Shown: one piece after another, positions 17,070-52,339 of the stretch
How positions within the stretch are numbered: the first letter of the stretch is position 1
How the letters are laid out: every line of letters starts with the position of its first letter
Assembly: GCA_002104905.1 (NCBI GenBank)
Contig: MCFE01000227.1
Span: forward strand, 1 to 64,000
DNA length: 64,000 nucleotides
From: Basidiobolus meristosporus CBS 931.73
Taxonomy: Eukaryota > Fungi > Basidiobolomycota
Direction of reading: 5' to 3'
Notes under the pieces: model-generated
Databases searched by the model: none
The model's input: the letters and a program-made list of their open reading frames with translations, nothing else
What the model was told of the DNA's origin: nothing
Made by a program: the position numbers and the translations under genes

Positions 17070-19293
17070 CTGTGTTTCCAACTCTTGAGAAACAGCTTTT
17101 GTCTTGTTAGTAATTCTTCTTGGCTATGATGGGATTCAGTCTGTTCTGGAATGACAGCATTAATTGGTAAGAGCTGCAGCATCTGTCTCACACTTCCCTG
17201 TCTCTGGCGTTAGTGAACTTTTTTCTCATTGCCTTTACCTCTCTCACTGCCAAATATTTCACTGTTACTTTCACTGAGAGCTTCTTGTTTCACACTACAC
17301 TTTTTCTTTGATAAATGCTGCACTGATGCATCTGTTTCTGCCTGCTTCTCCTGTGTCAGCACTCTTCCGGCACCTTGATGTTTCTTTGCCACTTGCTTGA
17401 AACTTTCAGCCTTGCTTGGGAGATGTTCCTGAGGGAGCTGCCTCTGTATAGTAATTGCAACCATATTCTACTGCATTTTATGGTTTCTGCTATACTTGAG
17501 GCACTTTCTTAGCATACAAATGTGGGCACAAGATCTATTACTTACTGGAATCCAGGATATTGTACATGGAGCATATTAAGCACATATTGCTTAGCCTTGA
17601 ATTCCTTATGGTCATATGATATACTGGCCTTAAGGTGAAGCTATGCTTGACTACTAACTGCCTCTGAAACATTATCCCACTCTTAATTATTGGACTCAAT
17701 TGTATCATGGATCTTCAATGTTGTTTGACCTCAAGGCTGGGTTATTAAAATCACAGTCTCTCCCTTTCATGCTGTCTTAGATTTTTCTGTGTGCTTGATC
17801 TCTGAGTGCTGCTAGTGTGTATTAAGGACTTTTTGGTGTTCTCCTGCTTTTGCATTGGGAAATTACTTGGTTATTGGCTATGACATTAATCCACTTGAGT
17901 TCCTTCTTTGCAGCCTATGTATGGTGTTCTCTATCTGGGATATTGGCTGCTCTACACATATTATCCACTCATCCTGCCTCAGGATCATTTTCTGATTTCT
18001 CTAGCCCATTACTTCAATCCTATTTGCCACTTCACCTAACTGCTTCATTTATGCTTTTGTATGTACTGGTATCATACTTGCTAATAATAGTGGTAGTGAT
18101 GTTACAATGGTCATTAGACTTGTTCCATTGGATAGTGCCACATTGAGCCGTGAGTGCCAATTGCAATGGAATGCTTGTAATAGTCTAGAGGTTTTCTCCT
18201 TCAAGGTTGGAAATTCTTGATCTTTCAAATGTGTATAACAGTAGCAATAGCAATATAAAGAAATCAGTATAATATTGGCTTTGTGATATTTTAGTGATGG
18301 AATACTCTTCATCACCATAGCTCCTCAAGTTCTCAGTCAAATAGGCAATTGAGAAAATCTGTGGAGCAGCAAGCTGACCATAGTTTTTAGGCAGATGAGA
18401 ATGTAGCATGTGCAGTACCTCTGGTAAAACACCAGCAAATGGACTTGTTCCGTTAGATAGTGCCACATTGAGCCGTGAGTGCCAAATGATGCCATAGTGT
18501 GCCAGAGAGGTAAAGTGAGCCTATACTTGGCCACAGAGTGTGAAACATAGCTCTGCATTGTCATGTAAAGCAGCCCCTGTGTTTAAGCCATTGCGCAGGA
18601 GAAAATCCATTTTTTGACCTTTTTTTGTGGATCAATGTAGCTCAGGATGTTGAGAGTACAGGAGAACAGAAGATATGTGTCTGGTACTCAATACCCATGG
18701 CACTCTGAATCTAGCTCCTGTAGCTTGTATCATGTCACAAAAATGAATGGCACTATCTTGGTCCACTGGTACTATCTGGCACTATAAGTGCTTTGTATAG
18801 ATCTTACTTTAGGGCTAATATTTAAATATAGTGCCAGATAGTACCAGTGGACCAAGATAGTGCCATTCATTTTTGTGACATGATACAAGCTACAAGAGCT
18901 AGATTCAGAGTGCCATGGGTATTGAGTACCAGATGCATATCTTCAATCTGTTTGTGCTCTAACACATCCTGCACAACATTGATCCAAAAAAAAAGGTCAA
19001 AAAGTGATTTTCTCCAACACAATGGGTGAAACACAGGGGCTGCTTTGCATGAAGATGCAGAGCTATGTTTCACACTTTGTGGCCAGGTAGAGGCTCACTT
19101 TACCTCTCTGGCACACTATGGCATCATTTGGCACTCACGGCTCAATGTGGCACTATCTGACGGAACAAGTCCATTTGCTGGTGTTTTACCAGAGGTACTG
19201 CACATGCTACATTCTCATCTGCCTAAAAACTATGGTCAGCTTGCTGCTCCACAGATTTTCTCAATTGCCTATTTGACTGAGAACTTGAGGAGC
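17070..19293 (+). mobile_element. En/Spm-family relic (second-gene region), host of foldback copy A
   Basis: Colinear with 21.95-23.3 kb in the same orientation; interrupted at 18116-19172. Confidence 0.7.
18116..19172. mobile_element. Foldback element copy A (core 18441-19172) with a residual 45-bp left terminus and a captured inverted flank
   Basis: TSD ATT at 18113-18115 and 19173-19175; original terminus 18116-18160; 18166-18440 is the reverse complement of 19173-19447; 40-bp central spacer. Confidence 0.92.
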
Positions 19294-19509
19294 TATGGTG
19301 ATGAAGAGTATTCCATCACTACAATATCACAAAGCCAATATTATACTGATTTCTTTATATTGCTATTGCTACTGTTATACACATTTGAAAGATCAAGAAT
19401 TTCCAACCTTGAAGGAGAAAACCTCTAGACTATTACAAGCATTCCATCCAGAATATTATGCAACACAGAACATGCAGTAGTGAACACATGTCTGAAGTTA
19501 CAGCTCATT
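19294..19509 (+). mobile_element. Truncated copy of the TG..CA-bounded element at 43134-44364
   Basis: Colinear with 43134-43350; cut exactly where a CCCTATG terminus begins at 19510. Confidence 0.6.
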
Positions 19510-20250
19510 CCCTATGGAAGATAACTTGGTCCAGCAGGTGGATCTAATCCAGATCAGCCATATAAATACCATCAGGAGGCATCTATAATACAAGCAACTT
19601 GGAATTAATGACCCTTTATGCAATCTCAAGACAAAATCACAACAGCATTTGACTAACTTTACAGCCAAAAAGAGTTAAAATCGTGACAGTGTTTGGGCAG
19701 TGTTTTGTCAAGAGCTGCATAGCATTGTTGTAGTCTTAGTGCTCCCTTCAACTATCTGAGTAGATCTGACCAGCCAGTACATCCAACTGCCTTATATGGG
19801 CAAAAACCTGACAGTGCTTTGACAGCCTTATTGCAAGCCTCTGATGGCATTATAATGCCAGTATGGTGGCCTACAGCTAATTCTGTATAGTGCTACCACA
19901 CCGGCTTACCAAATGGTACTTCCTTTTTATACCTCCCCTTGCGTAATTCAAATATTCCACTGTAGAATCACCCTCTTTATTTGCTTACCCACTACTTCCT
20001 TGGGCATTCCACTTATTATTTAAGTCAAAAAATCCCATGGCCTCCTGCTCACCAACCTCTAGAAACATGCACAGCTGCCGCAATTGATATACTTCTATCA
20101 CCTCAACTTAACGGCTTTTTAGTGTGATATTTGCAAAGTTGTCATAAGCCATGTGCAGCCGGTAACATATACAACTTGCAAACATATGTTTGGTTGCCAC
20201 TGCTTCTGCCATGAATACTGCCTGAATACTCACAAATAACTCTTTAGTAG

Positions 20251-20757: not shown

Positions 20758-23700
20758 GGTAGTTAGCCAGTATATTTCATCTTCCTGCTGGATCCTAGTC
20801 CCCATGTAGCTGCACTTATGCACTTGTTTGTGTGAATTCCATATTGAATGGTGTAGAAGTTGGCTTGTGACTAAGAGAAATCTGTCATACCTTGGTAGAG
20901 TTTTCCACAACAAAATTGCTGCTTTTTGCACCCAACCCAACTTTGCACTACTTAACTGCTAACCCACACATTGGGGCTGCTTAGCTTCATAATGGTTGGT
21001 TGGCTCTGCTTCTGCCATGAATGCCTCCTGAATATCTGCAAAGAACTTTTTGATATATTGTTGGTATATTCCATCTCCGTGCTGGATCCTAGTTGCCCTT
21101 ATAGGTGCTCTTTGGCTCCTGTTTGTGTGAGTTCCTTATGGAATGATGAAGAAATTGGCTTGTACCACGGAGATACCTGACATACTTGGTTAAAGTTGTC
21201 CTCACAAGATTTAGTAGCTTGTTGAGTTCAGCACACCTTTCCATTACTTAACTAACCCTATGAAAAATTATTGTAATGATCCTGTCAAAAGGCTATCACA
21301 AAGTTAAAGTCCCATGACTAAGAGGTACTGATCCCATCAGGACACCATCCAGAGACCATAAAAAAATAATTGCATCCCAGATTTCATAAAAAATTAGTTA
21401 AAATTTTTCACCACAACAACGTATAAGTGGCTTTTGATTGTTTCCCTGCCAGTTTGCTCACTCTCTGATCCTGGACACTCTATCACCTCCTATATTTGTG
21501 TGCATTGATTGGCTATTGCCTCTTTTTCACACTCCTTACTTCCTGACTCAGCTGTTTCTCTTACTTTGCATTTGTATAAATTAATTTATTTCCATTGGAA
21601 CTTCTGTTGCACCTCAATTGCCAATTGTATTGACCTATGCAAGTCCCTATACCCTACACCAACATTAAGCCCAACCCCACACTCAACAAGAAATGCCATT
21701 AAAATCCTCCACTCAATAAGTGTTTCTGCTATAACCTTCAGGTTCCTCAACTTTGTCAGGAACCCAACAGCTTTATGCCACTGTTCATTCACTGGTTCCC
21801 ACCTGTCCTGGTCTTCAGCTAGCACTGCAATTTATAGCACCTCATCTGCCAGTATTTGCAATAAATCCTTGCAATATTCAAGTGTGTTTTCTTGAGCACT
21901 GCTCTTAAAGAAGTGCTGCAACCTCTTGGTGTGCCTATTAATGTTCCAAAACTCTCCCAACACTTGTGAAAACAGCTGTTTTCTTGTTGGTAATTCTTCT
22001 TAGCTATGATGGGATTCAGTCTGCTCAGGGCTTGCTGCATTAATTTGTGAGAACTGCAGTATTTTGGATGCCTCCCTGTCTCAGGCTTGGGTAGACATTT
22101 TCCCTTTAACTTTCCCTTTATCACTGCTGCTTTGTCTGAGTGCTTCCTGTAATGACCTACATTTTCTCCTTAATAAATTCTGCACTGACTCATCTGTTCT
22201 GGCCTGCTTGTGCCTTACTGGCACTCCTCAGGCAGCCTGACATCTCTTTTCTGCTTGTTTTCAGCTCTCAACCATAGTTGGGATGGGCTCCTGTAAAAGC
22301 CCCTTGTTTAATCATTGACAGGTCCTTCACTGCTACTTTAACTGAACAATTCTGAGTAGTACTATGCAGTTTCTTAAATAAGTGTTGTGCTGGTGCATCT
22401 AAGTTGGCCTGCTTGTCCCTAATTGGCACTCTTCCAGCTACCTGACAACTCTTTGACACTAGTCTGGCACTTTTGGCCCTGCTTATAACAGGCTATTGAG
22501 AGAGCCACTGGTTTTTAGCCATGAGATCCTTGCTCTTCTGCCTTTGATAGTTTCTGCTACTCTTAAGATGCTTTCTTAGCATACCATTGATGGCCCAAAA
22601 TCTGTTTGCCTGTTTGAATCCAGGACAATACTCATGGAACAAGTCAAGTGCATTCTGCTTGGCCTTGAGTTCCTAATGGTCTAATGGTATGCTGGCCTTA
22701 AGGTTATGGCATGCTAGACTTCAGACAGCCTCTTGAATATTAGGCCACTCTGCATTACTGCACTCAACAGGTTCCTAGATATTGAATGTCTTTTGATTTT
22801 TAGGCTTTTGTATAAACATCACATTGTCTCTCTCTCATGCTATGATAGGTTTTTCTGTGGGCTTTATCTTTGGAGACTGTTGTTGTGCTTCAAAGACTGT
22901 ACAGTGTTCCTCTGCTGTTACATTAGGAAATGGCTCAATTCTTGGCTGTGACATTGAGCTACTTGAGTTCCTTTGTTGCAGTAAAAATACTGCTTTCTGT
23001 ACCTGGGATATTGATTGCTCTACACATATCATCTCCTCATCCTGCTTCCAGACTATTTCCTGATTTCTCTGGGCCAATGCATCTATCCTATCAGCCACTG
23101 CACCTAATTGCTTTGTTACTTCTTTGGTATGAGCTGAAAACATACTTATTAATATGGGTGGTGGTGATATATGATGGCCACTTGCTGGTCTTCAATTGAC
23201 GGTACTGCATTTGCTACATTCTCATCTGCCTTAGTATAATGGTCAGCTTGTGGCTCTGCAGAGGTCATCATTGCCTACTTGACTGAGAGCCTGAGGAGTC
23301 CGCATTATCACTTTCAGTGGGCACACTACTAACAAGGCCTTTTTTAGATGTAGCCCCACTTGTTGCACTGAATGTTGAAGCAAGGTGTTGTTGAACTGTT
23401 CTTGTGTTGCCATCAGTGGTGGGGTACAGTTGGGAACCAGACAACTTTGCTTTTTTTTTTGGCAGCATATATATGGATGTAAGTCAAACCAAAGGAGAAA
23501 TAGTGTTAGATACACATGTGTATGTGGTGTCACAACATCATTTATAATGCTTACAATGGTAGGTCACCATTGATCATTACATTCATGTAGGTGTGATGCC
23601 TCAAATACAAGACTGTCTTGAATTCACATGATTATAGACCAAAAAATGATATAATGGAGTGACATTGCTGAAGGTCAAACTGTTTTCCCCATGGAAAAGA

Positions 23701-23871
23701 CTACTTTGACTCGACACTGTAAGAGAAGAGAAAAAGACCATGTGGCTATTGTAGCAAGCCTCTCCGCCATGAAACACACAGACAGTATAGGAAGTATTAT
23801 AAGAATCATGGCCAGTGTGTTGCATCACAAGTAATATTTGACCATTCATTGGTCACTGCTGTACCAACATT

Positions 23872-24605
23872 AGACTTGTTCCCTTGGATAGTGCCACATT
23901 GAGCCATGAGTGCCAAATGATGCCATAGTGTGCCAGAGAGGCCAAGTGAGCCCATATTTGGCCACAGAGTGTGAAACATAGCTCTGCATCTTCATGCAAA
24001 GCAGCCCCTGTGTTTCACCCATTGTGCAGGAGAAAATCCATTTTTTGACCTTTTTTTGTGGATCAATGTAGCTCAGGATGTGTAAGAGCACAGGAGAACT
24101 GAAGACATGCTTCTAGTACTCAATACCCATGGCACTCTGAATCTAGCTCCTGTAGCTTGTATCATGTCACAAAAATGAATGGCACTATCTTGGTCCACTG
24201 GTACTATCTGGCACTATAAGTGCTTTGTATAGATCTTACTTTAGGGCTAATATTTAAATATAGTGCCAGATAGTACCAGTGGACCAAGATAGTGCCATTC
24301 ATTTTTGTGACATGATACAAGCTACAGGAGCTAGATTCAGAGTGCCATGGGTATTGAGTACTAGAAGCATGTCTTCAGTTCTCCTGTGCTCTTACACATC
24401 CTGAGCTACATTGATCCACAAAAAAAGGTCAAAAAGTGGATTTTCTCCAACACAATGGGTGAAACACAGGGGCTGCTTTGTATAAAGATGCAGAGCTATG
24501 TTTCACACTCTGTGGCCAGGTAGTGGCTCACTTGGCCTCTCTGGCACACTATGGCATCATTTGGCACCCATGGCTCAATGTGGCACTATCCAACGGAACA
24601 AGTCT
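23872..24605. mobile_element. Foldback element copy B, 734 bp
   Basis: 347-bp inverted arms, 40-bp spacer, termini AGACTTG/CAAGTCT, TSD ATT; empty site ccaaca(c/t)tatcttg in the paralog at ~47.26 kb. Confidence 0.95.
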
Positions 24606-24609
24606 ATTA

Positions 24610-26750
24610 TCTTGCTGGCTGGTTGATACTTCTATATTGGCACCTGTCTGTCTTTGTCACCTTGAGAAAACTGAGTCATGTGAGTTTGTGATACCTTTAA
24701 GCTCACCTCAGCCTTCTGAATATGGCATGCAGAGTGATAGCTGTATGATCCAGAGACTGTCCTGATTCAAACATGTGTCAATAGTTACATGGAATTCACA
24801 TCCAAATGCTACCATTGCAACATCTCCAAATCATCAGGAATTCACCACCATTGAAGGAAAACACCATTGACACTCAGGATATATTCCAGCAATACCCTGT
24901 CTGAGGAAGCTGATGCGGTCCCACAAATATTGCAAAGCTATACAGTACCACACACAGTATCAATCAAGCACAAACATATCTAAATATTCAATGGCACACA
25001 TTACAAACAGTCAAGAAGCAAGGGCTACTTTGAAGGTATGTATGACAATGCCTTTGCCTTAGCACTTGATGGATTCTCATTAAACAAGCACTTTACCAGC
25101 AAATCCTGCTGGTCACTGACTTTTACTAATCTGAATCTGCTGCCCATCTTATGGCATCAGAGCTATAATCTGATGGTAGTCACACTGGTATCTGGGCCTA
25201 AATCACCATTCAACCTGGACAGCTACCTGAATCCATTACTGGATGAATCTTGTATGCTTTCCCATGGGATAACAGTAAATGTCCATCATGCAAAAGCACA
25301 TATTATTATCTGAGTTGGAGATGCCCCAGCCATCAGCAAGATTGCAGGTTTTCTAGGTGCAATGGATAGTATTGCTGTCAAATATGTGAGATCTAGGGAA
25401 TATACTTCATCACTCCCACACATTATTATTACCCAAAGACCTGCACTAAAAGCATCATCTTTCCATAGAGAGAACATACAGAAGTCAGCATGTAATTGCA
25501 GCAAAGTTGGCAAGCTATAAGCAATTGGCCAGAATATGGAATTAATTGGAAGCTGAAGATACTTAAGATAGACTGTATCTGTTGGAGAAAAAGCTTTCCA
25601 CTGAGAGCAATGCATTTGCTTTTCAACAATATCCCTATACTGATGACCAAGTTGTACATGGGGCATTTCAAGCTATATGAGCCCTTTGCAATACCAGAGA
25701 AATTTGAAAGAATTAGCAAGATATTACAGAGTATCTGCCATCCTAAGAACTTCTCACAGGCTCCAATAAATATTCATATGCATATGCACCAATACAAGTA
25801 CAAAGACTGGATACACTTCATATGTATTTATTCAAGTGGCCTTCTGAAGCCATTCCTACCAAGTGTACATTGGAGGCATTAGGAGTCATATGTAGACATT
25901 GTAGGAATATTTATCTGTAAGCAGATCACCAATGCAAACTTGATGCATCTGCAGCTGTTGTGCAAGGGGTTTATGATAGGATTTCAGTTGCTAAACTACA
26001 AACATAAAGCTCAATGTGTACATCTCTGCTACTACTGTATCCATTCTCTACTTCAACATGCATGGTGTGTGGAGAATATTGGGCTGTGCTTCACCTTTTG
26101 GGAGTTTCCTAAGTTACAGATGTGTGGAGAGATAGAAAGATGAGTCAAATTGCAAGTACTACCTTATCCCAATCTCATCAAGAATATTACTTTCAAGTCA
26201 ATCATGGATGTGAAGAGTTGACACATGGAAAACAGTCAAGAAGAGTTGGAAAATGCTGGGGACCTATGTGCACATGGAGTCACCTATGCCTATGACATCA
26301 AGAAGCTAAGCAGCCCCAATGCTTGGGTAATCTGTTAAGTAATGCAACATTGGGATGGGTGTAACAAGTAACTAATTTCTATTAGGAAAACTCTACCAAG
26401 GTATGCCAGATTTCCCATGGTCACAGTCCAACTTCTACACCATTAAATACAGATTTTGCACAAACAAGTGCCAGAGCACACTTATAAGGGGAACCAGAAT
26501 TGAGTAGGGAGAAGGATTACATATTGGCTAAGTACCAAAAGGCTCTTTGCAGATATTGAGGAGGTACTCATGGCAGAAGTGGCAACAACTAAACATATGT
26601 TTGCAAGTTGTATATGCTACCGGCAGTACAAGGTATGTGGCAATTTTGCAAGTATTACACCCAAACGCCGCAAAGTTGAGGTGAAAAAAGTGTGTCAATT
26701 GCAGCAGGTGTGTGCATTTGTAGAGGTTAATAAGCAGGAGGCCATGGTAT
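24610..26750 (+). pseudogene. En/Spm (Tnp2/Transposase_21-like) transposase, multiply disrupted; boundaries approximate
   Basis: Motifs across frames and copies: ACVNS.MAFT..ARCP.CQE, FALALDGFSLNK, SCWPLIL.N.NLPP, GPKSP..LDSYL.PLLDE, IGDTPAI.KIAGF.GHN.RYCCQIC, AMHLLFKNIP, IHSLL..GPC.TFWE.P. This is the established En/Spm motif order. Confidence 0.85.
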
Positions 26751-27142
26751 TTTTTGATTTAAAGTGTATGTGGAATGCCCAAGGTAGTAATGGGTAGCTA
26801 ATAAAGAGAGGTGATTCTACAGTGGAATATATGAATTGCACAAAGGGAGGTAGAAAAAGGAATTACTTTTTGTTAAATTGGTACAGTAGCTTTATACAGA
26901 GCCAGCTGTAGGCCCCCATACTGCCAATATAATGCCATCACAGTCTTGCTGTGAGGCAGTTGAAATTCTGGCAAGTTTCTTGTCAAGTTTTATCACTCTA
27001 TTTGGTAGTAGAGTTAGCAAAGCACCATTGTGATCCCATTATAAGATTGCTAAGCTGCTGATATTATTATGGTCACTTAATGGGATTCTGACAGCTGATC
27101 TGGACTCAATCCACCTAAAGGACCAGACTATTTTCCATAGGG

Positions 27143-28960
27143 TGACTACCCACAATTCTGGGCTGCTTAGCTTCTTTATGCCATAGGCATAGGCAACTCC
27201 ATGTGCACATCTTTCCTAAGAATTTTCCAACTCTTCCTGGCTGTCCTCCATATGACAACTCATCACATCCAATACAGACTTGAAAGGAATAGTCTTGGTG
27301 AGACTGGAATATGGCAGTACCTACAACTTGACTTGTCTTCCTATCTCCCCACACATCCGCTACATAGGAAACTTCCAAAAGGTCACGCAATGCTACCAGT
27401 GTACTCCTGGTGGGAATTACTTCAGAAGGCCACTTGAATAAATAAATATCAAGTTTATCCAGTCTTTGTACTTGTATTGTTGCATATGCATATGAATATT
27501 GATTGGAGCCTGTGAGAAGTTCTTAGGATGGCAGATACTCTGTAATATCTTGCCAATTCTTTCAAACTTCACTGCTATCTTGACAGTCTCATATAGCCTG
27601 AAATGCCCCTTGTGCAACTTGGTCCTCAGTATAGGGATATTCTTGAAAAGCAAATGCATTGCTCCCAGTGGAAAGCTTTTGCTCCAACAGATACAGTCTA
27701 TCTTAAGTATCTTCAGCTTTCAATTGAATCCATATTCTGGACAATTACTTATAGCTTGCCAACTTTACTGCGATTACATGCTGACTTCTGTATGTTCTCT
27801 CTGTGGAAAGATGATGTTCTTATTGCAGGTCTTTGGGTAATAATAATGTGTGTAAGTAATGGAGTATATCACTTTGATCTGACATATTTGACAGCAATAC
27901 CATCTATTGTGCCCAGAAAAGCCAGCTATCTTGTTGATGGCTGGTGTATCACCTATGCAGATGATAATATGTGCATTTACATGACAGCCATTCACTGTTA
28001 TCCTTGTTGAAAGGATATAAAATTAAACCAGCAATGGATACAGGTAGCTATCAAGGTTGCACAGTGATTTTAGCTTAGATACCCTTATGACTACCATCAG
28101 AATTTGGCTCTGATACTATAGATGGGGCAGCAGATTCAGGTTGAAGAGAATCAGGGACTGTCAGGATTTGCTGGTGGTGTACTTACTAAATCAGAATCAA
28201 TCAAGTGCCAAATCAAGACATAGTTATACATACCTACAGAGTAGCCCTTCAATCTAAATTGTTTGCAATGTTTGCCATCCAATATATCAGATATGTCTGT
28301 ACTTGATTGATACTGAGTGCAGTACATCATAGCTTCACTATATTCATTAGACTGTATGAGCTTCTTCAGATGGGGTATTACCAGAAACTATCTAGAATGG
28401 GAACAGTGTTTTCCCTGACAGTGGTGGATTCCTGACAAGTTGGTCACCTTGCAATAGTGGCATATTTAGATGCCAATGTCAAGTAACTGTTAACACAAGC
28501 AGGTATCAGGATGGTTTCTGGCTCATATGCTGCCAGTAACATAATGGTTGTTCATGTATACCAAGTACATGGTAAGTTGCCTCCTAGGATGACATTGACA
28601 AGAAGTAGTGGTAAACCCTCAAAGCCCTCATTACTAGTACTAGTAGAAATGCACTACTTCTCTGGCAACAACTTCACATCATTCACCAGTAGATGGATTA
28701 TTAGGCTGACTTGACTCCATGAAATATCCTTGACATTTTTTTCCACTGGTGTTGTTTCATTGCATTTTGGGGTTTTACCTGGCTCACACAGGGTATTGTA
28801 GTTTGGGGAGATTGGCCCACAGTCCATCAGTGAGCCTGCTTCATCAGAGCTATCACTTGGCATACCATATTTAGAAGGTTGGGGTAAGCCTAAAGGTGTC
28901 ATATACTCACCTGACTCAGTTTCCACAAGGTGACAAGTACTGCTAGGTGCCATCATCAAA
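27143..28960 (-). pseudogene. En/Spm transposase relic
   Basis: ORFs 27417-27659 and 27774-27995 give MHLLFKNIPIL and HIIICIGDTPAINKIAGFSGHNRWYCCQIC. Confidence 0.82.
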
Positions 28961-29528
28961 GCATCAAGTGGCCTGCAAGATACTGCTGGTACAGCAGTGA
29001 CTGAGGTATGGTCAAATGTGACTTGTGTAGCAAAACAATGGCCACAATCTTTGTAAAACTTTCAATGCTGTTTGTATGCTTCATGGTCAAGAGGATTGCT
29101 ACAAAAGCCACCTGGTCTTTTTTTGCTTCTCTTACAGTGTTGAGTCAAAGTAGTATTGTCCATAAGGCAAACAGTTTGACACTTAACACTGCAACACTGC
29201 CATATTGTATTTTTGTCAATACTCATGTGAATTCAAGACAGTTTTCCAATCGAAACATTACACCTACATGAATGTAAGATGAAATGTTGATCTGTCATAG
29301 TAAGCATTACAAGTAATGTTGTGGCACCACTTACACATATACATATTACACCATTTTCCCTTTGGTATGACTCACTTTGATGTATATGCTGCCAAGAAAT
29401 AATGCATAATCATCTGGTTCCCAACTAAACCCCCTGCTGACAGCAGCAGAAGAATGGTTGGACAACAGCTTGCTTTGATATTCAGTACAATATGCAGGGC
29501 TACAACCAAAAAAAGCCCTGTGGACATA

Positions 29529-30262
29529 AGACTTGTTCTGTTGGATAGTCCCACATTGAGCCATGAGTGCCAAATGATGCCATAGTGTGCCAGAGAGGTC
29601 AAGTGAGCCTATACTTGGCCACAGAGTGTGAAACATAGCTCTGCATCTTCATGTAAAGCAGCCCCTGTATTTCACCCATTGCACAGGAGAAAATCCATTT
29701 TTTGACCTTTTTTTGTGGATCAATGTAGCTCAGGATGTGTAAGAGCACAGTAGAACTGACAATATGCATCTGGTACTCAATACCCATGGCACTCTGAATC
29801 TAGCTCCTGTAGCTTGTATCATGTCACAAAAATGAATGGCACTATCTTGGTCCACTGGTACTATCTGGCACTATAAGTGCTTTGTATAGATCTTACTTTA
29901 GGGCTAATATTTAAATATAGTGCCAGATAGTACCAGTGGACCAAGATAGTGCCATTCATTTTTGTGACATGATACAAGCTACAGGAGCTAGATTCAGAGT
30001 GCCAAGGGTATTGAGTACCAGATGCATATCTTCAATCTGCTGGTGCTCTAATACATCCTGCACAATATTGATCCAAAAAAAAAGGTCAAAAAATGGATTT
30101 TCTCCAACACAATGGGTGAAACACAGGGGCTGCTTTGCATGAGGATGCAGAGCTATGTTTCACACTCTGTGGCCAGGTGGAGGCTATATTGGCCTCTCTG
30201 GCACACTATGGCATCATTTGGTACTCATGGCTCAATGTGGCACTATCCAACGGAACAAGTCT
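29529..30262. mobile_element. Foldback element copy C, 734 bp
   Basis: Same termini and spacer; TSD ATA at 29526-29528 and 30263-30265. Confidence 0.95.
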
Positions 30263-30334
30263 ATAGTGCCCACTAAAGGTAATAATACAACACCTCAGGC
30301 TCTCAGTCAAGTAGGCAGTTGAAAATCATTGCGG

Positions 30335-31412: not shown

Positions 31413-31426
31413 TCCACCCCCCTCTC
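31413..31426 (-). other. Polypurine tract
   Basis: GAGAGGGGGG(TGGA) directly upstream of the 3' LTR. Confidence 0.85.
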
Positions 31427-31451
31427 AGCTTTGAACTCAGGTCAAAGCAAA

Positions 31452-33974: not shown

Positions 33975-36306
33975 TCTTCTTTTTGGTCACAAACCATCTG
34001 TTAGCATAAGGTCCATGGCAAGGTTCTAGGATACCAGCTTCAATCTTCTTCTTAAGTAGGTCATGCACATCAGCTTGGAGTCCTCTAGGCAGTGGGTAAG
34101 GTTTAAATGACCAGGGTGTGTGGGGCACTGTATGAATTTTGATAGGTTTTTCAACTGATGTCTTTAAGAGTCCCATCTCCTTGTCGTTATATGAGAAAAC
34201 CTTATCATGCCTTTTCAGGGTTTCTTCAAATAGTAAGATCTCCTCCGGTGTTAGGTTTCCATCACCAATGATAAGTTGCTTAAGTCTCTCAGGTGTAAGT
34301 CGTATATCTTCTGGTGTTCCTTCTGGTGGTCTGATGTAATCAGCAGGTCGAGACCCATCAGTTAAAGGTGTAAGTGATGGTCTAATCTTCTGTTCCACTG
34401 TCTTGTATTTTGTGCAAACCATAGCTGACTGCTCCTGTATACCTAATGAGCAGCTCCAACTGTTAGGGTGTATACTGTCAGGCTCCTCATCTTCTTCTAT
34501 AACAAGATGTGTCTTCTGGCAAGCGGTATGTGTCCTCTTATTGTTGGGTGTTACCCCACAGAATGTTGACTGTAGTCCTGGGTTGGATCCTTGTATAGTG
34601 TACCACACTGACCCATCAGAATAGTTGGTAGTTGTAGCCTTAGTACTGGTCTCCCATGGTCTGCCTAACAGAAGGTCAAAGTTTGCCTTCTGGCAGATAA
34701 AGAGGGGAAGCCAGACCTTGATTCCTTGTACCTCAATAGGGAACTTGTGCACTACACCATAGAGTGGGCTAGACCCTGAGTTTGCATCAGTCATGTTCCA
34801 TCCAATATCTCTATCAACAGGCAGTAGCTCCTTGCTTCTAAGTGTCTTCCAGAAGTCTAGCGGCATAACACAAATCTCTGAACCACTGTCAATATGGCAG
34901 TCAACAGGGTCATCATGTATATACCCTTTCACCACAGCAGTTGCAACTGAGTAAAAGGTCTTATATTTGGTAGCGTTGTCATCCTTTTTGTGGTCTTCAT
35001 GGTTTGTCTGGATTATATGGGTGTCCATATGTTCAACAGCTTGTCTTCTTGTTCTAAGCTGCTCATCAAAGGTCTTCCTAACAGACGGTGATACACTCAT
35101 GATTTCTCCAACTGACAAAGTGAGGTTCTGCTTCAGTAGTTTCTCAGTAATCAATTGGGGGCTTGAGTAGCCTGCTATCTTTGAGGTCATCTGAAAGTGA
35201 GGTAATGGGTCTTGGGTAGGCAGTGTTCCAGGCCTCTTGTCAATAATAACCTCAGGCTCTTCAAATCGTGGTCTTCTAAGGATGGGTTTGACAGGTTCTT
35301 CAGGAAGGTGTCTCTTAGTAGCAAAGGTGTCTACTTCGTATTTTCTGTTGTCAGGGCTGTTTGGACTCACTGTATGAGTCTCAATAGGGGCATCAACAGT
35401 AATCTTTCTAGTTGCTGAGTCAGACTTCTGGAAAAGGGCTCTCATTCCGCCTCTTCGGAAATTAGTGGGAATCCTTTTTCCTTCCTTATCAGCAAGCATT
35501 CCATCAGCATCAAACTGTACTGTTCCTTCTCTAAGTAGCTGGCTAAGCTCTGAGCATTCACGTCTGGCATGCTGAGTAGAGTCACACCAAATGCAGTGTC
35601 TAGGCAAAGCTCTTTGGCCCTCAGTAGCTACCTCAGCTGAGCCGTTAACCTTGAGGGCTAGCTTTTGTAGCTGTTCAGCAAGTTGGTCAATTCTGTCGGT
35701 AGTGTAGGTCTGATTGTCAGCAACAGCACTCTTTAGCTCCTTGGTTGGCTGGTCTGGCAGATTAGATGTCAGGAGTCTCATAAAGGTAGAAGTTTGCTTT
35801 GCCTCTAGGAGTACACGTTTCATCTCTGCAAAGCAAGGAATGCCAGACTTGTCATCCTTGGCTGCATGTAGGTCAACTTTCCTTGCCAACTCCTGGGGAA
35901 GCCCTTGTGCAAGGTAAAGTGTCATGGTAAACTCAGTTATTGCCTGGGACTCTAGGAGTGGCTTGGCCATATCTTCATATTGTTGAATGAACTCTTCAAT
36001 TGGTAGCTTGGAGAGTCCCATCCTCCCAAAGTGTCTGAGGTCTTCAATTCCATAGTATATCTGGGGTCTGCCATACTCGGCCTGTAGGTAGGTCTTCATT
36101 AAGGTCCAGTCAGTCAGAATGTCTCCTTGTCTGAGAAGCTTGGTAGTAATATCATCAGTGCAGTAGTAGGGGAAGTCTTCAGCCATTTCTTGTTCAGATA
36201 GGCTGCACATCTTGCAGAGCTTCTCCCATTTGAATATGAAGCTCTCCACATTCTTTCCATCGAACTGTGGGGCTCCATGTGAGAGTGGTAACGGCATAGA
36301 GTTCAT
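33844..36306 (-). CDS. Ty3 gag-protease-RT N-terminus (gag-pol, frameshifted)
   Basis: APQFDGKNV gag start, CCHC knuckle CIWCDSTQHARREC, protease IDSGSEI, PWSFKPYP, GPYANRWF, KKKNGKLRFIQD. Confidence 0.93.
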   Translation of the reverse strand: MNSMPLPLSHGAPQFDGKNVESFIFKWEKLCKMCSLSEQEMAEDFPYYCTDDITTKLLRQGDILTDWTLMKTYLQAEYGRPQIYYGIEDLRHFGRMGLSKLPIEEFIQQYEDMAKPLLESQAITEFTMTLYLAQGLPQELARKVDLHAAKDDKSGIPCFAEMKRVLLEAKQTSTFMRLLTSNLPDQPTKELKSAVADNQTYTTDRIDQLAEQLQKLALKVNGSAEVATEGQRALPRHCIWCDSTQHARRECSELSQLLREGTVQFDADGMLADKEGKRIPTNFRRGGMRALFQKSDSATRKITVDAPIETHTVSPNSPDNRKYEVDTFATKRHLPEEPVKPILRRPRFEEPEVIIDKRPGTLPTQDPLPHFQMTSKIAGYSSPQLITEKLLKQNLTLSVGEIMSVSPSVRKTFDEQLRTRRQAVEHMDTHIIQTNHEDHKKDDNATKYKTFYSVATAVVKGYIHDDPVDCHIDSGSEICVMPLDFWKTLRSKELLPVDRDIGWNMTDANSGSSPLYGVVHKFPIEVQGIKVWLPLFICQKANFDLLLGRPWETSTKATTTNYSDGSVWYTIQGSNPGLQSTFCGVTPNNKRTHTACQKTHLVIEEDEEPDSIHPNSWSCSLGIQEQSAMVCTKYKTVEQKIRPSLTPLTDGSRPADYIRPPEGTPEDIRLTPERLKQLIIGDGNLTPEEILLFEETLKRHDKVFSYNDKEMGLLKTSVEKPIKIHTVPHTPWSFKPYPLPRGLQADVHDLLKKKIEAGILEPCHGPYANRWFVTKKKNGKLRFIQDMQPANAVTIRDAAIPPSIDDFAESFSGHSYLLNI

Positions 36307-36424
36307 TTTGGGTACGTAGGTTGGTGTTATAGTCTTGATAATATCGGTAGTCTTGTTTCAATAAATGGGTGACGGCTCAAATCTTCAGGTAAATCTTGTT
36401 GGGTCCTAGGGAGCTTGTATGAAC

Positions 36425-36442
36425 CCCCCACGTTGGGTGCCA
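36425..36442 (-). other. Primer binding site, tRNA-Lys(CUU)-type
   Basis: TGGCACCCAACGTGGGGG, 4 nt from the 5' LTR, compared with the known Lys1,2 PBS TGGCGCCCAACGTGGGGC. Confidence 0.8.
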
Positions 36443-36446
36443 AATA

Positions 36447-37524
36447 TGTGGTGGTGTATAAGTCCAAAGGGCAAAATACGGCCAACACTTCTCAAGTGTG
36501 AATGTGTGTGGGGTGTTCACTGGGTGCGATAACCTCTGGCAAAAGCTTGCTAGGAATACTGGGTCTTTTATCTAATCTAATGTGATGGGGGATAAAGCCT
36601 CAAGCTTGTCAAGGGAAAACTATTGAACTACAATCCCCAACTTAGTTGGCGTCTTAACAAAAGTTTATAATGGCTTCGACGTCCTTTGAGATGACAATGT
36701 ACTAAAGCTTCCAAAGTCAAAACAACTGTAAACTCCACCAACAGGGACTTGATAAGAATGCAGCTTTGACCAATAGTTACAAAGACTGAAAAGTATCTTT
36801 GCCTGTACAAGAACAAACTTGGGAAAACAAACAATATAATAAAATATACCTACTCTGAGTATTCCTCACAAGTAGTGCCTCCAAGGTCAGTTGGCTGTCA
36901 GCGCGGTTTCCTGGGAGTATCGTCAGGTCTGAGTCAGAAAATAGTGGTAATAGGTAGCGGTGATCTCACTAATCAATAAGTTGGAATATTGGAAGAGGGA
37001 TGATTTATTTTAAGGGATAGCCTCCCTTATATACTTTTTTGCTGCTCAATTTCTTGCTAGAAAATACTTTCCGGAAGTTTCCAGAAGGTAGTAGACAACC
37101 AATCATGTCTTTGTGTACTAAAAATAGCGCAAATTCTTGGCGGATTGTTCCATGAGACATAGTAGCACCTAGCCAATCAGGTAGTGGTAACATGAAACCT
37201 CTGCGTCATGTGGTTGCCTCTTATGGTAGTGAGATGGGGGATTATGAAACCAAGATGGTCACGTGACATGGGCACTGTTGGGGTACTTGCCTTATAAGGT
37301 AACTATCTTATCTTGGCATCTCGGCAAGGAATAAGAATAGCTTGTGCAATGGGTTAATAGGGACAAATAGTTTGTCAGGTTGCATAGTAATAATCACATA
37401 GACAAAAATAGGAAATATTGCAAATTTGGGATGATAATAATATAGGCGGGGTAATCCTTTTTAGGGAAGTGAATGCATAAGAATGAGCACATCTGCCTGT
37501 GGGTGTCACTGTGACCCCACTACA
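36447..37524 (-). repeat. 5' LTR of the Ty3 element
   Basis: Direct repeat of 30335-31412, adjacent to the PBS. Confidence 0.96.
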
Positions 37525-40500
37525 ACGGCATGAGCTTCTTTACATGGAGTATTGCTAGAATACATCTGGAGTGTGGATAATGTTTTCCTCCTGAGGTGGT
37601 TGAATACTGGCAGGTTTAACAGCTTACAACAGTGGTATTTTCTACTATGAAAGCAGTGGAATTATTAACACATCCTGGTATCAGACCCTGCACTGGGTTG
37701 TATATTGACAGCTCCATGATGGTTTTCCATTTCTACAATGCACATGGTAAGTTGCATCTTGCAGTGATTTTGGCAAGTAGTAGTGGCAGATCCTCAATGC
37801 CCTCATTGCTGATATCAATGAAAACATGCCACTTCTCTAGCTGCAACATTGCATCATTCACCAGTAAGTAGATCAATGGGCTCACTTGGCTCCATAAAGC
37901 ATCCTTGGCATTTTCTTCCACAAATTTTCTCTCACTGCATATTAGGATCTTGCCATACTGAAGCAGGGTACAGCTGTGAGGAGAGATAGACTTACAATCC
38001 ATTATTGTGCCTTATTCATCAGAGCTTCACTCTGCATGCCACATTTACAAAGCCAAGGTGTGCCAAAATATATCACAAACTCACCCAAAATGATTTGTGC
38101 AAGGTGACCAAATTGGCTAGGTGCCAATATAGATGCAACAGGAGCCTGGCAAGACATTGCTGGTACAATAGTGTTTGGTGAATGCAAAAATATGACTTGT
38201 ATGGCAGAAAACTGGCTGTGATTCTTGAAACACTTCCTTTGCCATCTGCATACTTCATGATTGAGAGGCTTGTTACCATAGCCACATGGGTGTTTTTCCA
38301 TTTTCTTATGTTGTTGAGTCAACATTCTCTTCTCTGTGGGATAACAAGCTTAGTAAGCAATAACAATACACTTTTGATAACTCTTTTGTCTGTACTCTTA
38401 TGTTTTTAAGTCAATATTGTATGTGAGACATTGCTCCTACTAGAATGTAAGACTCAACAATCACCTACAATAGTAAGCATTATAAATAATGCTGCATAAC
38501 CACATTCACATGTGCATGTAATCCTATATCCCATTTGGTTTTGTTCATTTATACATGTATGCAACCAAAAAATAAAGTAGAGTTATCTGGTTGAGAACCA
38601 AACTACACTGATGAGAGCAGCAGAAGAATGATTGGACAACTGCTTGCTCTGACATACAGGGCAACAAGCCAGGCTACATACAAAAAGGGCATGCTGACAG
38701 TGTGCCCATTGAAGGTAATAATGTTTACTCCTCAAGCTCTTGGTCAAGTATGTAACTGAGAGTATCTGCAAAGCTGCAAGCTGATCTTAATGCTTTGGCA
38801 GATAAGAATGTAGTAAATACAGTGCCTCTGGCAGAAGACCAGTAGATGATTGTCATAACATCAACACCATTAATACTAGCTAATATATTGTCAGTATATA
38901 CCAAAGCATTAATGAGGTTATTTGGTGCATTTGCTAATGATATGGTTAAGATAGCTCAGAGAAACTCAAAAACTGTCTTGAGGCAGAAAAAATAAATGAT
39001 ACATGTCGAGAAAGCAATATCCAGTGTTGAGAGTGCAGTATGAAGGCTGCAATGTACACACTCAAGTAACACAATATCTCAGCCAAGAATTGAACCATAT
39101 ACTCAATGTGATAGCAAAGGAACCCTTTTTAGTCTTTGAAGCACAACAACAGAACAAAAAGATAGAGCCAACAGAAAAAGCTACTGCAGCTTAGGTGGGA
39201 GGTATTATGAAATCAATACCCAGCCTAAAAAGCAAAAGATATTTAAGATCCAGGAGGTCATTGAGTGAAATGACAAACAGTGGTCAAGTATAAAGAGACT
39301 GCCAGAAGACTAGGATAGCATCACTTAAGGTTGGCATAACAAGGGACAATCAGAAACTCAAGGCCAAGCAGAATATACTTGATCTGTTACATCAACATCA
39401 ACCAGGGATTCTAACTGACAAACAGACTTTTGGCCAGCATTGACATGCTAAGAAAGGGTCTCATGAATTGCTGAAACTGTCAAAGATGGAAGAACAAGGT
39501 TGTCAGGGCTAAAAATCTGCATGCTCCTTAAGAATTAACTGCAAGCAGAGCAGAAAGCTCTTAACAAATGGCAAAGATATGGCAGGTAGCCAAAAGAGTG
39601 CTGGTGAGGGACAGGTAGGCAGCAACAGATGTAGCAGTAGAGCATTTATTAAGGAAAAGCACACAGTCATGAGAGCAATGAAGGACTTGACAGTGATAAA
39701 ATCTCCAGCTTTCTCAGGCACCAGTCACAAGAAGAGCCAAAAACTCAGACAAGTGACAAAAGAGCCTCAGGTTTTCAGGAGAGTGCTATTAAGGGACAAG
39801 CAGGTAAAAACAAGTGCACCAATGCAGCTTTTATCAAGGAGAATGTAGTACATAACATGAGCACTCAATCAAAGTAGCAGTTAAAAACTCTGCAGTGGCA
39901 AAGATAAAGGTAAGGAGAAGAAAGTCTACTCTTACCAGTGATAGGGAAGTATAACAAAAAGCTGCAGTTCTCATAAATTAATGCTATCAGCCCAGAAATG
40001 GCTGAATCCCACTAAACTCAAGAATAATTAATAACAAGAAAACAGCTGCTTTCATCAGAGCTGGAAGCACAGCCAGTTCAGCTATACTCAAGTGAGGTAG
40101 ATGAGCATGCAGAGAAGGGCAATTTGTTCTCCAATGCCTCCACATCCTCCATGGTGGACAGGGTGTAAGTCCCACTGGTAGACAATACAAAATTGTTAAA
40201 AACTCAAAGGACTATCTCAATGCCAATATTGCAGTTTTGGAACACTGATAGGCACACCAAGAGGTTACAACATGTGAAGTGTAGTGCCCAAGAAAGCTCA
40301 CTTGAATATTGTAAGAGCTTTTTGCAAAAACTGGCAGATGAATTGCTAGACCTTGCAGTGCTGGCTGAAGACCAGGATATGAAGGAACCAGTTAACGGAC
40401 ATTAGCATAAAGCCATGAAGTTTCAAAACTCACAAAGTCACAAAAATTAGTGTTGCAGATGAAATACTTATGAATTATGGACTTAAATGGAATTGCTTGT

Positions 40501-40929: not shown

Positions 40930-40959
40930 AATCCTCACCCAGCTGCAACAGTTACTCCA

Positions 40960-44364: not shown

Positions 44365-46017
44365 GTTCCCTGCCAATTTTCTCACTTTCTGATCTTGGCC
44401 ACTCTTTCACCTCCTACATTTGTGTGCATTGATTGGCTATTGCCTCTTTTTCACAGTCCTTACTTTCTGACTCAACCATTTCTCTAACTTTCAAACACAT
44501 ACAAGTAGATTTGTTTCTGTTGAAACTTCTGTTATACCTCAGTTGCCAATTGTATTGGCAAATATAAGTCTCTATACCCTACACTAATATTAAGTCCAAC
44601 CCCACACTTTACATGTAACTTTGCTATAATCTATTGCTCAATGAGTATTTTAGATATAATGCCCTGTTTCCATGACTTTGGTAGGAACCCTATAGCTTTA
44701 TGCTACTTTTCATTTACTGAATCCCACACATCCTGGTCTTCAGCTAGCACTGCAACTGAAGAAGTGCTGCAACTTCTTGGTGTGCCTATTAATACTTCAA
44801 AATTCCACTGAAGGTATTGAGAAAACCTTTTGAGTTCTTGGCATCATTACTGTATGTTGGTTGAATCTCCACTTGGTCAGCAATGGAGGATGTGGAGGCC
44901 ATGGTAGATGAGTTGCCTTTCTCTGCACACTCATCTACATCACTGGAGTGTAGCTCAACAGACTGCACTTCCAACTCTTGTGAGAGCAGCTGCTTTCTTT
45001 GAAGTAATTCTTCTTGGCTATGATGGAATTCAGTCTGCTGTAGGAATACAGCATTAAATAGTAGGAACTGAGGATTTTTCCCATACCTCCCTGTCTCTGG
45101 CCTGGGTACACTTTTCTCCTAACTTTTTCCTTCATCACTGCCAGGTCTTTCACAGCTATTTTGTTGGAGCTCCTGTTGCTTTGAACTACATTTTCTACCT
45201 GGGAAATGCCACTCTGATGCATCTGTTTTGGCCTGCCTGTCCCTTGCTGGCACTCTGCAGGCAACCTGATGCTTCTTCCGCTCTTGTTTTGAGCTCTCAG
45301 CCCATGCTGTGATGGGCTCCTGAGGCAGTTGCTGGCTTTTATCACTGCCAGGTCCTTCACTGCTACTTTGACTGAGAGCTTCTTGAGTAGAGCTGTGTTT
45401 TTTCTATGATAAATGTTATGCTGGTGCATCTGTGTCTGCCTGCTTTTCTGTTATTAGTACTCTTCCGGCTAGCTGAAGCCTCTTTGATACTTGTTTGGAG
45501 CTTTTAGCCCTGCTTGTGACAGGCTCTTGAGGAAGCCACCAGTTTTTAGCTATTGCACCATGGTTCTTCTGCCTTTAATAGTTTCTGCTATTCTTGAGAT
45601 ACCTTTTAGCATACCAATGCTGGCCCAAAATCTGTCTGCTTATTTGCGTTCAGGACAATGCTCACAGGACAATTCAAGCGCATTTTGTATTTCATTGAGT
45701 CCCTGATGGTCACATGGTATGCCAGCCTCAAGGTGTTGGCTTGTTGGCTCCTAAGCACCTTTTGAATGTTAGATCACACTTCATCACTGCACTCAATAAC
45801 TCCACATATCCTCAGTGTCCATTGACATTTAGACTTTGGTATAATCTCTACATTATTTTGCTCCGATGCTGCGATAGGTTTATCTGTAGGATTTATATTT
45901 GGGCAATATTGTTGTGCTTCACAACTGTATGCAGTTCCTCTACAGCAACATCAGAAGATGGCTCAATTCTTAGCTGTATATTGAAATAACTGAATTCCTG
46001 CTTTGCAGCCTAGCTAC

Positions 46018-46386
46018 TGTTGAAATATTGGACTATTTGGTATCATTCTGCAGCTAAAAATTTACTTAACAATTCTGGACTAGTCTTGGTCACTGTGGGA
46101 CTAATTTACAGCTCTTACTTTGCCATTTTCTTCAGATCTATGTTCTTATGATTATTCCCCTATAGTCAGGATAAAATTAGCACTAATACTAACTATTATG
46201 TACTAACCCTGAAACTGTTACACAATGCTCCTAAATATTGAGAAACCCTCCTTACTTAGTACTACAGATGTATTACTTCTACAAAGGTATAAATACTGAG
46301 ATTCTTTGTTAATAAACAACAGTTCAACTATTATCACTATTTCTTGAGAAGCTCCTTATATCCAAATCACTTCTTAAATTGCAACA
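46018..46386. mobile_element. Solo LTR, 369 bp, Copia-type termini
   Basis: TGTTG...CAACA with perfect 5-bp TSD GCTAC (46013-46017, 46387-46391). Confidence 0.88.
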
Positions 46387-48361
46387 GCTACTGCTTTCTC
46401 TGCCTTGGATATTATTGCACTACACCTTTATTTGCTTATCCTGTCTCTGGACTATTTATGATTTCTCTGGTACATTGCATCAATCCTATCAGCTACTGCA
46501 TCTAATTGCATCATTAATGCTTTGGCATGAGCTGCCAACATACTTGTTAATGCAGGTGGTGATGACGTTATGAAGGCCATTTGCTGGTCTTCAACTGAAG
46601 GTACTGCTTTTGCAACATTCTCATCTACCTCAGCATTATGGGCAGCTTGGGGCTCTGCTCAGATTCCCATTTGCCAGCTTGACTGAGGGCCTGAGGAGTC
46701 TGCATTATTACTTTCAGTGGGCACACCGTCCCCAGAGCCTTTTATAGTTGTAGCCCTGCTTGTTGCACTGAATGTCAAAGCAAGCAGTTGTCCAACTTTT
46801 CTTCTGCTGCAGTCAGCAGTGAGACTTGGTTGGGAACCACACAACTTTGCTTTTTTTTGGCATCATACCTAAGGAAGCAAGTCAAACCAGAGGGGAAATG
46901 GTGTTACATATACATGTGTAAAAGGTGCCACAGCTTTATTTGTAATATTTACTATGTCAGGTCATCATTGAATCTTACATCCATGTAAGTATGATGTCTT
47001 AAATTCAGGACTGTCTTGAATACACATGAGTTTTGACAAAAAATGGATATAATAGCTTTACATTGTTGAGTGTCAAGCTGCTATCTCAATAGACAAGACT
47101 AAATTAATTCACATCCATGAGAGAAGAGAAAAAAGACCTTGTGGCTATTGTAGCAAGCCTTTCAGCCATGAAGCATGCAGACAGCATAGGAAGTATTACA
47201 AGAATCATGGCCAGTGCTTTGCCACACAGGCTGTCTTTGTCCATTCACCAGTTGCAACTGTGCCAACACTATCTTGCCAGCCACTTGACACTTCTATCAT
47301 AGTACCTGGCCATACTTGTCACCCTGCATAAACTGAGTTGGAAGAGTTGGTGACACCTTTAGGCTTGCCCCAGCCATTTGAATATGGCACACAGAGTGAT
47401 AGCTCTGAAGAAGCAGGCCCACTGACAAATTGAAAATATATCTACCCTCACAACAGTACCCTGCATGAGCCCTGCACAATCCCATTATGCAATGAGAGGA
47501 CCTCCATAGACAAGAATGTTGAGGATGTTTTATATATTCAAGTGAGACCAGTACTTTGTTTACTGGTGAAGGATGTGATGTTATGGCTAGAGAAGTGGCA
47601 TGTTTACACTGATATCAGTAATTGGGGCTGAGAGGATGTAATACTACTCCTTGTCAAAATCATTCTGGGATGCAACTTGCCATGTACATAGTATAAATCA
47701 ACAACTGTCATGCAGCTGTCAAGATACAACTCAGAGGCCCTTCTGATACATGCATATGTTGACAGTTGCATTGCATCTACATCAGAGAATGTCACCATTG
47801 CAAGATGTCCAACTTGTCAGCAATCTAACACCACTGGGGGAAAGCATTGTCCACACTCCAGATATATTCCAGCAATAGGCCATCTAAAGATGCTCATGCA
47901 ATCCAACAAGTACTGTGAGCCCATATAGTTTTTCACTCAGTGTCAATTAGGCACAAATATATTGAATGTATTCAATGGCAAACATTATAAACAGCTAAGA
48001 AGAAAGGGCTACTTTGAAGGTATGTATGACCATGCCTTTACTTTTGCACTTGATGGATTTTCATTAAACAAGTACTCTGGCAGCAAATCCTGCTGGCCAC
48101 CAATTCTCATAAACTGGAATCTGCCACCTATCTTATGGTATCAGAGCAAATATCTAATAGCAGTCTCACTAGTACCTTTGCCTAACTCACCATCCAGCCT
48201 AGATAGCTACCTTTACCCATTATCAGATGAATTTAGTATGTTTGCCATTTGGATAATGGCAAATGGCTATCATGTCAACGTGCATGCTGGTATCTGCATG
48301 TGAGATACCCAGCCATCAGCAAGTTAGCCAGCTTTTCTAGTCACAATGGTAGAAATATAAT

Positions 48362-49095
48362 AGACTTGTTCCGTTGGATAGTGCCACATTGAGCCATGAG
48401 TGCCAAATGATGCCATAGTGTGCCAGAGAGGCCAAATGCGCCTATACTGGGTCACAGAGTGTGAAACATAGATCTGCATCTTCATGCAAAGCAGCCCCTG
48501 TGTTTCACCTATGATGCAGGAGAAAATCCATTTTTTGATGTTTTTTTGTGGATCAATGTTGTGCAGGATGTGTAAGAACACAGAAGAACTGAAGACATGC
48601 ATCAGGTTCTCAATACCCATGGCACACTGAATCTAGCTCCTGTGGCTTGTAGCATGTCACAACAATGCATGGCACTATCTTGGTCCACTGGTACTATCTA
48701 GCACTATAAGTGCTTTGTATTGATCTTACTTTAGGGCTAATATTTAAATATAGTGCCAGATAGTACCAGTGGACCAAGATAGTGCCATGCATTGTTGTGA
48801 CATGTTACAAGCCACAGGAGCTAGATTCAGAGTGCCATGGGTATTGAGTACCAAATGCATATTTTCAATCCTTTTGTGCTCTTACACATCCTGCACAACA
48901 TTGACGTAAAAAAAAAGGTCAAAAAATGGATTTTCTGCAACACCATTGGTGAAACACTGGGGCTGCTTTGCATGAAGATGCAGATCTATGTTTCACACTC
49001 TGTGGCCAAGTATAGGTTCACTTAGCCTCCTTGGCACACTATGGCATCATTTGGCACTCATGGCTCAGTGTGGCACTATCCAATGGAACAAGTCT
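48362..49095. mobile_element. Foldback element copy D, 734 bp, inside an En/Spm transposase
   Basis: Same termini and spacer; TSD AAT at 48359-48361 and 49096-49098. Confidence 0.95.
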
Positions 49096-52330: not shown

Positions 52331-52339
52331 GCACGGTCA

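Follow-up and report, generated by a model that had tools for sequence, protein, structure and literature searches.

Discrete, probably non-reciprocal transfers between the arms of a foldback element in Basidiobolus meristosporus

The 64,000-nucleotide stretch of Basidiobolus meristosporus CBS 931.73 analysed here (contig MCFE01000227.1, positions 1 to 64,000 of the forward strand; hereafter the window) contains four full copies, designated A to D, of a foldback element of 732-734 bp, and one 48-nt terminal fragment of it at 18116-18163. In the alignment each of the two inverted arms spans 347 columns (346 nt on either side of A), and together they enclose a 40-nt spacer, which has the same sequence in A, B and C, deviates at one base in D and lies in unaltered orientation in all four copies. 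The initial annotation had proposed that the two arms of each copy evolve in concert through recurrent arm-to-arm conversion. Non-reciprocal transfer between arms is indeed real, being evident as a tract with captured flanking DNA in A and as a second tract in B, but the whole arms are not in concert and C is without any such event. The pattern, as far as the assembled sequence can reveal it, appears to be a mosaic of few discrete transfers. We consider it likely that the four copies are independent insertions of a non-coding foldback miniature inverted-repeat transposable element (MITE), with occasional non-reciprocal copying from arm to arm inside one element.

Copy A appears to record directly an episode of templated break repair, or of fold-back priming, at its own locus. 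The older repeat that hosts the element runs up to 18115 and continues from 19173, and between these points lie, in order, a stump that matches the outermost arm positions, a few nucleotides of filler, an inverted copy of the right-hand flank (X) and the present copy A (Table 1). X differs from the reverse complement of the adjacent flank at 1 of 275 positions, whereas host-repeat paralogs of this flank are only 70-80% identical to it, and thus the donor of X was the adjacent flank itself. The stump retains the family consensus at arm positions 1 (A) and 15 (G), where G and A, respectively, stand on both arms of A today, indicating that the symmetry of these two variants was made by the local event. 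The two arms of A differ at a single site within positions 1-82 and at 29 sites within 83-245, and the left/right-diagnostic sites from 83 inwards are unaffected. The transferred tract is at least ~355 bp long and has gained 2 differences since, so that the event is recent relative to the 5-10% divergence among the copies. The features of an inverted duplication are present in full: the inverted copy of adjacent DNA is contiguous with the arm and near-identical to its source, and its far junction is non-homologous. The old left tip and the right end of the locus are both intact and now enclose 275 bp of captured host sequence.

Arm-to-arm copying in the family probably begins with a break in or near one arm and its resection, after which the exposed 3' end pairs with the opposite arm, through either strand invasion or intrastrand fold-back, and is extended by templated synthesis. 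On the simplest history of copy A, the original left arm would have been broken and resected to about position 82, and its 3' end would have paired with the right arm by either route. As the sequence shows, synthesis then proceeded outward through the end of the arm and 275 bp into the right flank, and the product was end-joined to the 45-48-nt stump with 2-5 nt of filler. This repair history would explain why the arms of A are near-identical only at 1-82. Template switching in the course of replication would leave a product indistinguishable from that of break repair. All ten single-arm changes of the left arm of A fall within positions 119-240 (18559-18680 of the window), an interval in which the right arm has one, and they include the close groups 119/120, 145/147, 211/213/218 and 239/240. 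This section may have been single-stranded during the proposed repair and subject to damage or error-prone synthesis, or the cluster may be due to chance. A broader proposal, that fold-back priming is a regular part of the life cycle of the family, renewing the arms and at times extending them into host DNA, strikes us as unlikely. Were it true, longer mobilisable palindromes carrying host DNA could arise, and the 734-bp foldback could itself stem from a one-armed precursor.

Copy B carries the second transfer, which becomes apparent when the arms, denoted AL to DL and AR to DR, are compared segment by segment. Within positions 1-82 a single difference separates the two arms of A, and all other arms are at least 6 differences away; in 83-170 every copy groups by side (AR-BR 4 and AL-CL 6 differences, versus 8 for BL-BR); in 171-245 the arms of B are identical and both left-type, with AR and CR differing at 4 sites; and in 246-347 there is hardly any variation among A, B and C, and the arms of D have three private states in common. 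The arms of B show no difference at all in 171-347, and the right-diagnostic positions 187, 199, 201, 202, 213 and 222-228 are left-type on both. Right-type states are preserved on the right arm of B at 83, 87, 156, 157 and 170. This distribution indicates, on a reading of the aligned sequences, one left-to-right tract beside the loop with a single breakpoint between 171 and 186. The earlier suggestion that in B a left-type tract has overwritten a right-type one is therefore upheld, as the right arm is left-type at 199/201/202, where AR and CR remain right-type. A runs test, in which the longest stretch of concordant polymorphic sites was compared with permutations, was significant for copies A (p 0.010) and B (p 0.009) and not for C and D (p 0.66 each). 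The companion suggestion, that D bears the right-type tract on its left arm, stands as an observation, since the state is present on both arms of D at 199/201/202, but it needs no conversion. Conversion at 199-202 of D was rejected as a candidate event, because an ancestral symmetric right-type state with a later left-type state in the A/B/C lineage requires two events and not three.

Beyond these tracts, variants mirrored on the two arms of one copy are far more frequent than chance would allow. In the eight-arm alignment, in which the four left arms were set against the four right arms in reverse complement, the minority state occurs in exactly two arms at 18 sites. At 11 of these the two arms belong to one copy (A: 1, 15, 35 and 72; B: 240 and 244; D: 111, 152, 283, 302 and 307; C: none), at 6 they are on the same side of different copies (126, 154, 170, 213, 224 and 225), and at one (233) they are on opposite sides of different copies, a class that comprises 12 arm pairs. 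The 11 same-copy sites compare with 0.54 expected under independent mutation (P 2e-11), or 1.7 when rate heterogeneity is modelled with a gamma distribution fitted to the tree (P 2e-6), and their share of the two-arm sites, 11/18, compares with 4/28 expected (P 6e-6). All the mirrored variants named initially were found in the alignment (A 71-72; B 240 and 244; D 111, 283, 302 and 307), to which it adds A 1, 15 and 35 and D 152. At three further sites, B 82, D 149 and D 291, both arms of one copy are off the consensus with different bases; among the seven sites with two singleton states, three join arms of one copy, with about one expected. Such pairs could have begun as mirrored changes that later took a second hit.

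The relationships of whole arms follow a different pattern. Within-copy arm identity is 90-97%, and the two arms of one copy differ at 31 (A), 11 (B), 34 (C) and 34 (D) of 347 columns, compared with same-side distances between copies of 21 for AL-CL, 21 for AR-CR and 16 for BL-CL. The maximum-likelihood tree unites AR with CR (support 93/89), AL with CL (87/82) and BL with BR (73/86), and in the approximately unbiased (AU) test clustering by copy was rejected for A (p-AU 0.021) and for C (p-AU 0.007) and gave p 0.44 for D. Clustering by copy over the whole arm, as first envisaged, is thus seen in the tree for copy B only, and grouping of the separated arms by side, the outcome that had been set against it in advance, was obtained for A and C and not for B. 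In each of the four copies left and right arms are unlike at sites 156 and 157. The right arm is distinctive at 83 and 87 in A, B and C and at 187, 222, 226 and 228 in A, C and D, and sites 199, 201 and 202 set AL, BL, BR and CL apart from AR, CR, DL and DR. An old, inherited left/right asymmetry thus appears to sit mid-arm in the family, and because of it most arm segments group by side.

The assignment of these sequences to independent insertions rests on their borders and their surroundings. A repeat search and BLAST of copy B against the window, with alignment of the hits, bore out the four copies at the coordinates first given, with arms of ~347 bp and the 40-bp spacer. Target duplications of 3 bp accompany all four copies (A, ATT; B, ATT; C, ATA; D, AAT). 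Those described initially were recovered as such for B, C and D, but for A the bases immediately beside 18441-19172 form no direct repeat, and the duplication is seen only when it is reckoned from the old left end at 18116 (18113-18115 and 19173-19175). All four foldbacks reside in copies of one older repeat. Empty sites were reconstructed by fusing the 250 bp to the left and the 250 bp to the right of each element around a single duplication. For each of the four, the alignment with host-repeat paralogs is continuous over the junction, and close-up alignments show a single trinucleotide at the paralogous sites (A, ACT/ATT; B, ATT/AGT/ACT; C, AGT/GGT). The paralogous empty sites, together with the target duplications, confirm that the four insertions are independent. 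No open reading frame (ORF) of at least 80 amino acids lies wholly within any foldback, and the few overlapping ones cross its borders or the loop. With long inverted arms around a short loop, a total length below about 800 bp, target duplications and no coding capacity, the element has the make-up of a foldback-type MITE.

Table 1. Positions of the foldback copies, of the tracts transferred between their arms and of neighbouring features in the window
Feature	Position	Strand	Remarks
Copy A	18441-19172		left arm 18441..18786 (+), spacer 18787..18826 (+), right arm 18827..19172 (-)
Copy A target duplication, left copy (ATT)	18113..18115		equals 19173-19175; paralogous empty sites have a single ACT or ATT
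Stump of the original left end of copy A	18116..18163	+	45-48 nt matching arm positions 1-45/48, then 2-5 nt of filler to 18165
Inverted flank copy X	18166..18440	-	reverse complement of 19173-19447 save for 1 mismatch in 275 nt
Native host flank X', donor	19173..19447	+	first 3 nt are the right target duplication; in register with paralogs 23174-23299 and 46573-46698
Copy A recipient tract, left arm	18441-18522		arm positions 1-82; right-to-left transfer, donor right arm 18827..19172
Copy B	23872-24605		left arm 23872..24218 (+), spacer 24219..24258 (+), right arm 24259..24605 (-)
Copy B donor tract, left arm	24042-24218	+	arm positions 171-347
Copy B recipient tract, right arm	24259-24435	-	arm positions 171-347, converted to left-type; 83-170 still right-type
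Copy C	29529-30262		plus strand; left arm 29529-29875, spacer 29876-29915, right arm 29916-30262; target duplication ATA
Copy D	48362-49095		plus strand; left arm 48362-48708, spacer 48709-48748, right arm 48749-49095; target duplication AAT
Older host repeat	17000-19500, 21250-30300, 37500-39000, 44500-49400, 50600-54000, 56600-57500, 60700-64000		both orientations
Host repeat, tail-to-tail pair	25349-25880 / 27389-27920		89%
Gypsy-type retrotransposon	~30335-36746	-	
Copia-type ORFs	135-1973	-	cut by the window start
G+C-rich block	6000-13000		51-57% G+C
ORF of 477 amino acids	9630-11063	-	
ORF of 200 amino acids	12073-12675	-	

The ends of the element and its choice of target fit mobilisation by a transposase of the Pangu type, as judged from termini of AG or GG and an ANT-like target. 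Elements of the Pangu group, which belongs to the PHIS superfamily, have ANT 3-bp duplications, AG/GG termini and terminal inverted repeats (TIRs) of 11-40 bp (PMC4482050). In the foldback family B, C and D start with AG at either end, as does the stump of A, making seven such ends, and both present ends of A start with GG. The duplications ATT, ATT and AAT conform to ANT, as do the empty sites ACT, AGT and ATT, but the ATA of copy C does not. The family further departs from the Pangu group in that the entire 347-bp arm is inverted and in that no transposase is present in the window. The motif GTGCCA occurs in every arm as three forward copies within the outer 60 nt and three reversed copies within the inner 90 nt, with 0.13 expected, and the outer and inner segments that bear these motifs are the best conserved between copies; this arrangement fits putative protein-binding sites for mobilisation. 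Derivation of the foldback as a head-to-head dimer of one-arm MITEs was also considered and rejected, as the inner end of the arm lacks the terminal sequence and has only the GTGCCA-type motif in common with the outer end. No additional matches to the foldback termini were detected by BLAST in the window, an exact scan of metagenome contigs for a 29-nt motif common to all eight arms gave no match, and Rfam and tRNA scans of the window returned no matches.

It could be argued that the mirrored variants were not made where they now lie but were inherited by subfamilies, the mirrored points of B and D and some of those of A coming from source copies that were already symmetric, having been symmetrised in master elements or during transposition. 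Consistent with this view, the stump of A already has G at position 35, and the five mirrored sites of D are interspersed among 28 single-arm changes with no tract signal, as would be the case for old states. Indeed, the scatter in D suits inheritance from a symmetric source as well as it suits short-patch conversion at the locus. Positions 1 and 15 of A and its captured flank, however, are of local origin and are left unexplained by inheritance, which, moreover, still requires arm-to-arm copying somewhere in the lineage; the timing would shift and the mechanism would be the same. We regard inheritance as a possible, though not a probable, source of the mirrored points.

The remaining explanations dispense with copying altogether. 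Parallel mutation at hypermutable sites, through CpG deamination or C>T changes resembling repeat-induced point mutation, could draw on 15 G>A and 244 G>A, two of the 11 mirrored changes that read as C>T at CpA when the opposite strand is considered, and on the different bases found on the two arms at B 82, D 149, D 291 and A 213 (the right-arm base at 213 is also present in CR). However, the 11 include six transversions and no CpG C>T transition, the excess over expectation survives rate heterogeneity, the 12 cross-copy, cross-side arm pairs yield a single site, and neither the tracts nor the flank copy is within reach of point mutation; we judge this account highly improbable. Misplaced reads that homogenise the arms during assembly or polishing deserve attention, as palindromes are hard to assemble and the structures were read from the assembly, but in every copy 11-34 arm differences persist, left/right-diagnostic sites among them, contrary to what arm collapse would leave. 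The element is, moreover, short enough to be spanned by one long read, and A carries a specific junction of stump, filler and inverted flank, all of which makes an artefact very unlikely. Finally, selection for pairing of the stem might restore symmetry by compensatory change with no copying involved. The stem of 347 bp is near-perfect, and the computed RNA fold of copy B, at -677 kcal/mol, agrees with the earlier expectation that a read-through transcript would form double-stranded RNA, a prediction only. Nevertheless, at least 30 mismatches are tolerated in A, C and D, a single mismatch is energetically negligible and such selection cannot duplicate 275 bp of flank; the idea is barely credible.

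It should be emphasized that several observations count against independent insertion with occasional arm-to-arm copying as an account of the family. Copy C has no mirrored private site and 34 arm differences and gives no sign of arm-to-arm transfer, and the mirrored sites of D form no tract. As the stump has G at position 35, like both present arms of A, this position was symmetric before the flank was captured, and some of the mirroring thus predates the local event. The sample consists of the four full copies in the 64-kb window, such that 'private' means private among four, and every structure is taken from assembled sequence. With respect to mobilisation, the window holds no autonomous partner, the Pangu assignment draws on the ends and the target, and the duplication of copy C is off the ANT pattern.

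The window as a whole is a transposon nest. The older repeat that hosts the foldbacks is present in at least eight copies that are 70-82% mutually identical; ten of its ORFs gave no Pfam family match, and an En/Spm label for the repeat is unconfirmed. The Gypsy-type long terminal repeat retrotransposon, whose terminal repeats share 99% identity along 300 nt or more, contains an ORF of 840 amino acids with reverse transcriptase, RNase H and integrase and another of 820 amino acids with a DUF4100 match. In a word-based protein search of a large collection the best matches to its pol ORF were only 46% identical, and a look-up of the exact product returned no record. The Copia-type ORFs encode integrase and reverse transcriptase. 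The G+C-rich block contrasts with ~40% G+C in the remaining window, and neither of its two ORFs listed in Table 1 has a Pfam match.

Copying between the ends of one element is behaviour already known from Mutator elements, insertion sequences and genomic palindromes. The value of copy A lies in its retention, within 1.3 kb, of the prior state (the stump), the donor (the right arm and its flank) and the product (the outer left arm and the inverted flank), which together fix the direction of the event, a minimum tract of ~355 bp and the type of junction for break repair in a transposon palindrome. More generally, mirrored variants in foldbacks do not imply concerted evolution of whole arms, and arm trees may group by side while segments group by copy, which bears on dating from arm divergence.

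For maize Mutator elements, repair of one broken TIR from the other has been proposed as the means by which TIR symmetry is restored, a repair that could at times lengthen the inverted repeat far inward (PMC10401008). As in Mutator, the left and right ends of one element are unexpectedly similar in the foldback family. In contrast with Mutator, the foldback is a non-coding full palindrome of another superfamily, the transfer is patchy, and in copy A it ran outward into the host and not inward. In a Wolbachia insertion sequence a TIR mismatch was erased by end-to-end conversion within one element (PMC3004938); that element is prokaryotic, has short TIRs and has its interior inverted, whereas the orientation of the spacer is unaltered here. 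The paper on Galileo contains no discussion of TIR-TIR conversion and describes chimeric copies and one inward TIR extension (PMC3573991). Yeast provides a parallel for the mechanism, as foldback inversions and inverted duplications arise there via hairpins of single-stranded DNA after a break (PMC7467729). Like these, copy A has adjacent unique DNA inverted and joined via an existing inverted repeat, with a non-homologous far junction. Unlike them, it was resolved locally, by joining to the other broken end, with no chromosome-scale rearrangement. Mu killer in maize is a further case alongside foldback inversions and inverted duplications.

Arm-to-arm conversion is accepted for genomic palindromes, and the arms of those on the Y chromosome are >99.9% identical throughout, according to a passage in PMC1803023 that cites Rozen et al. 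2003. The likeness to Y palindromes drawn by the initial annotation does not hold for the arms as wholes: in the foldback family arm identity reaches only 90-97%, the arms are not each other's closest kin over their whole length, grouping by side is seen in half of the copies and one copy is without any event. What the two systems have in common is the presence of non-reciprocal tracts, that is, exchange in one direction between the arms of an inverted repeat.

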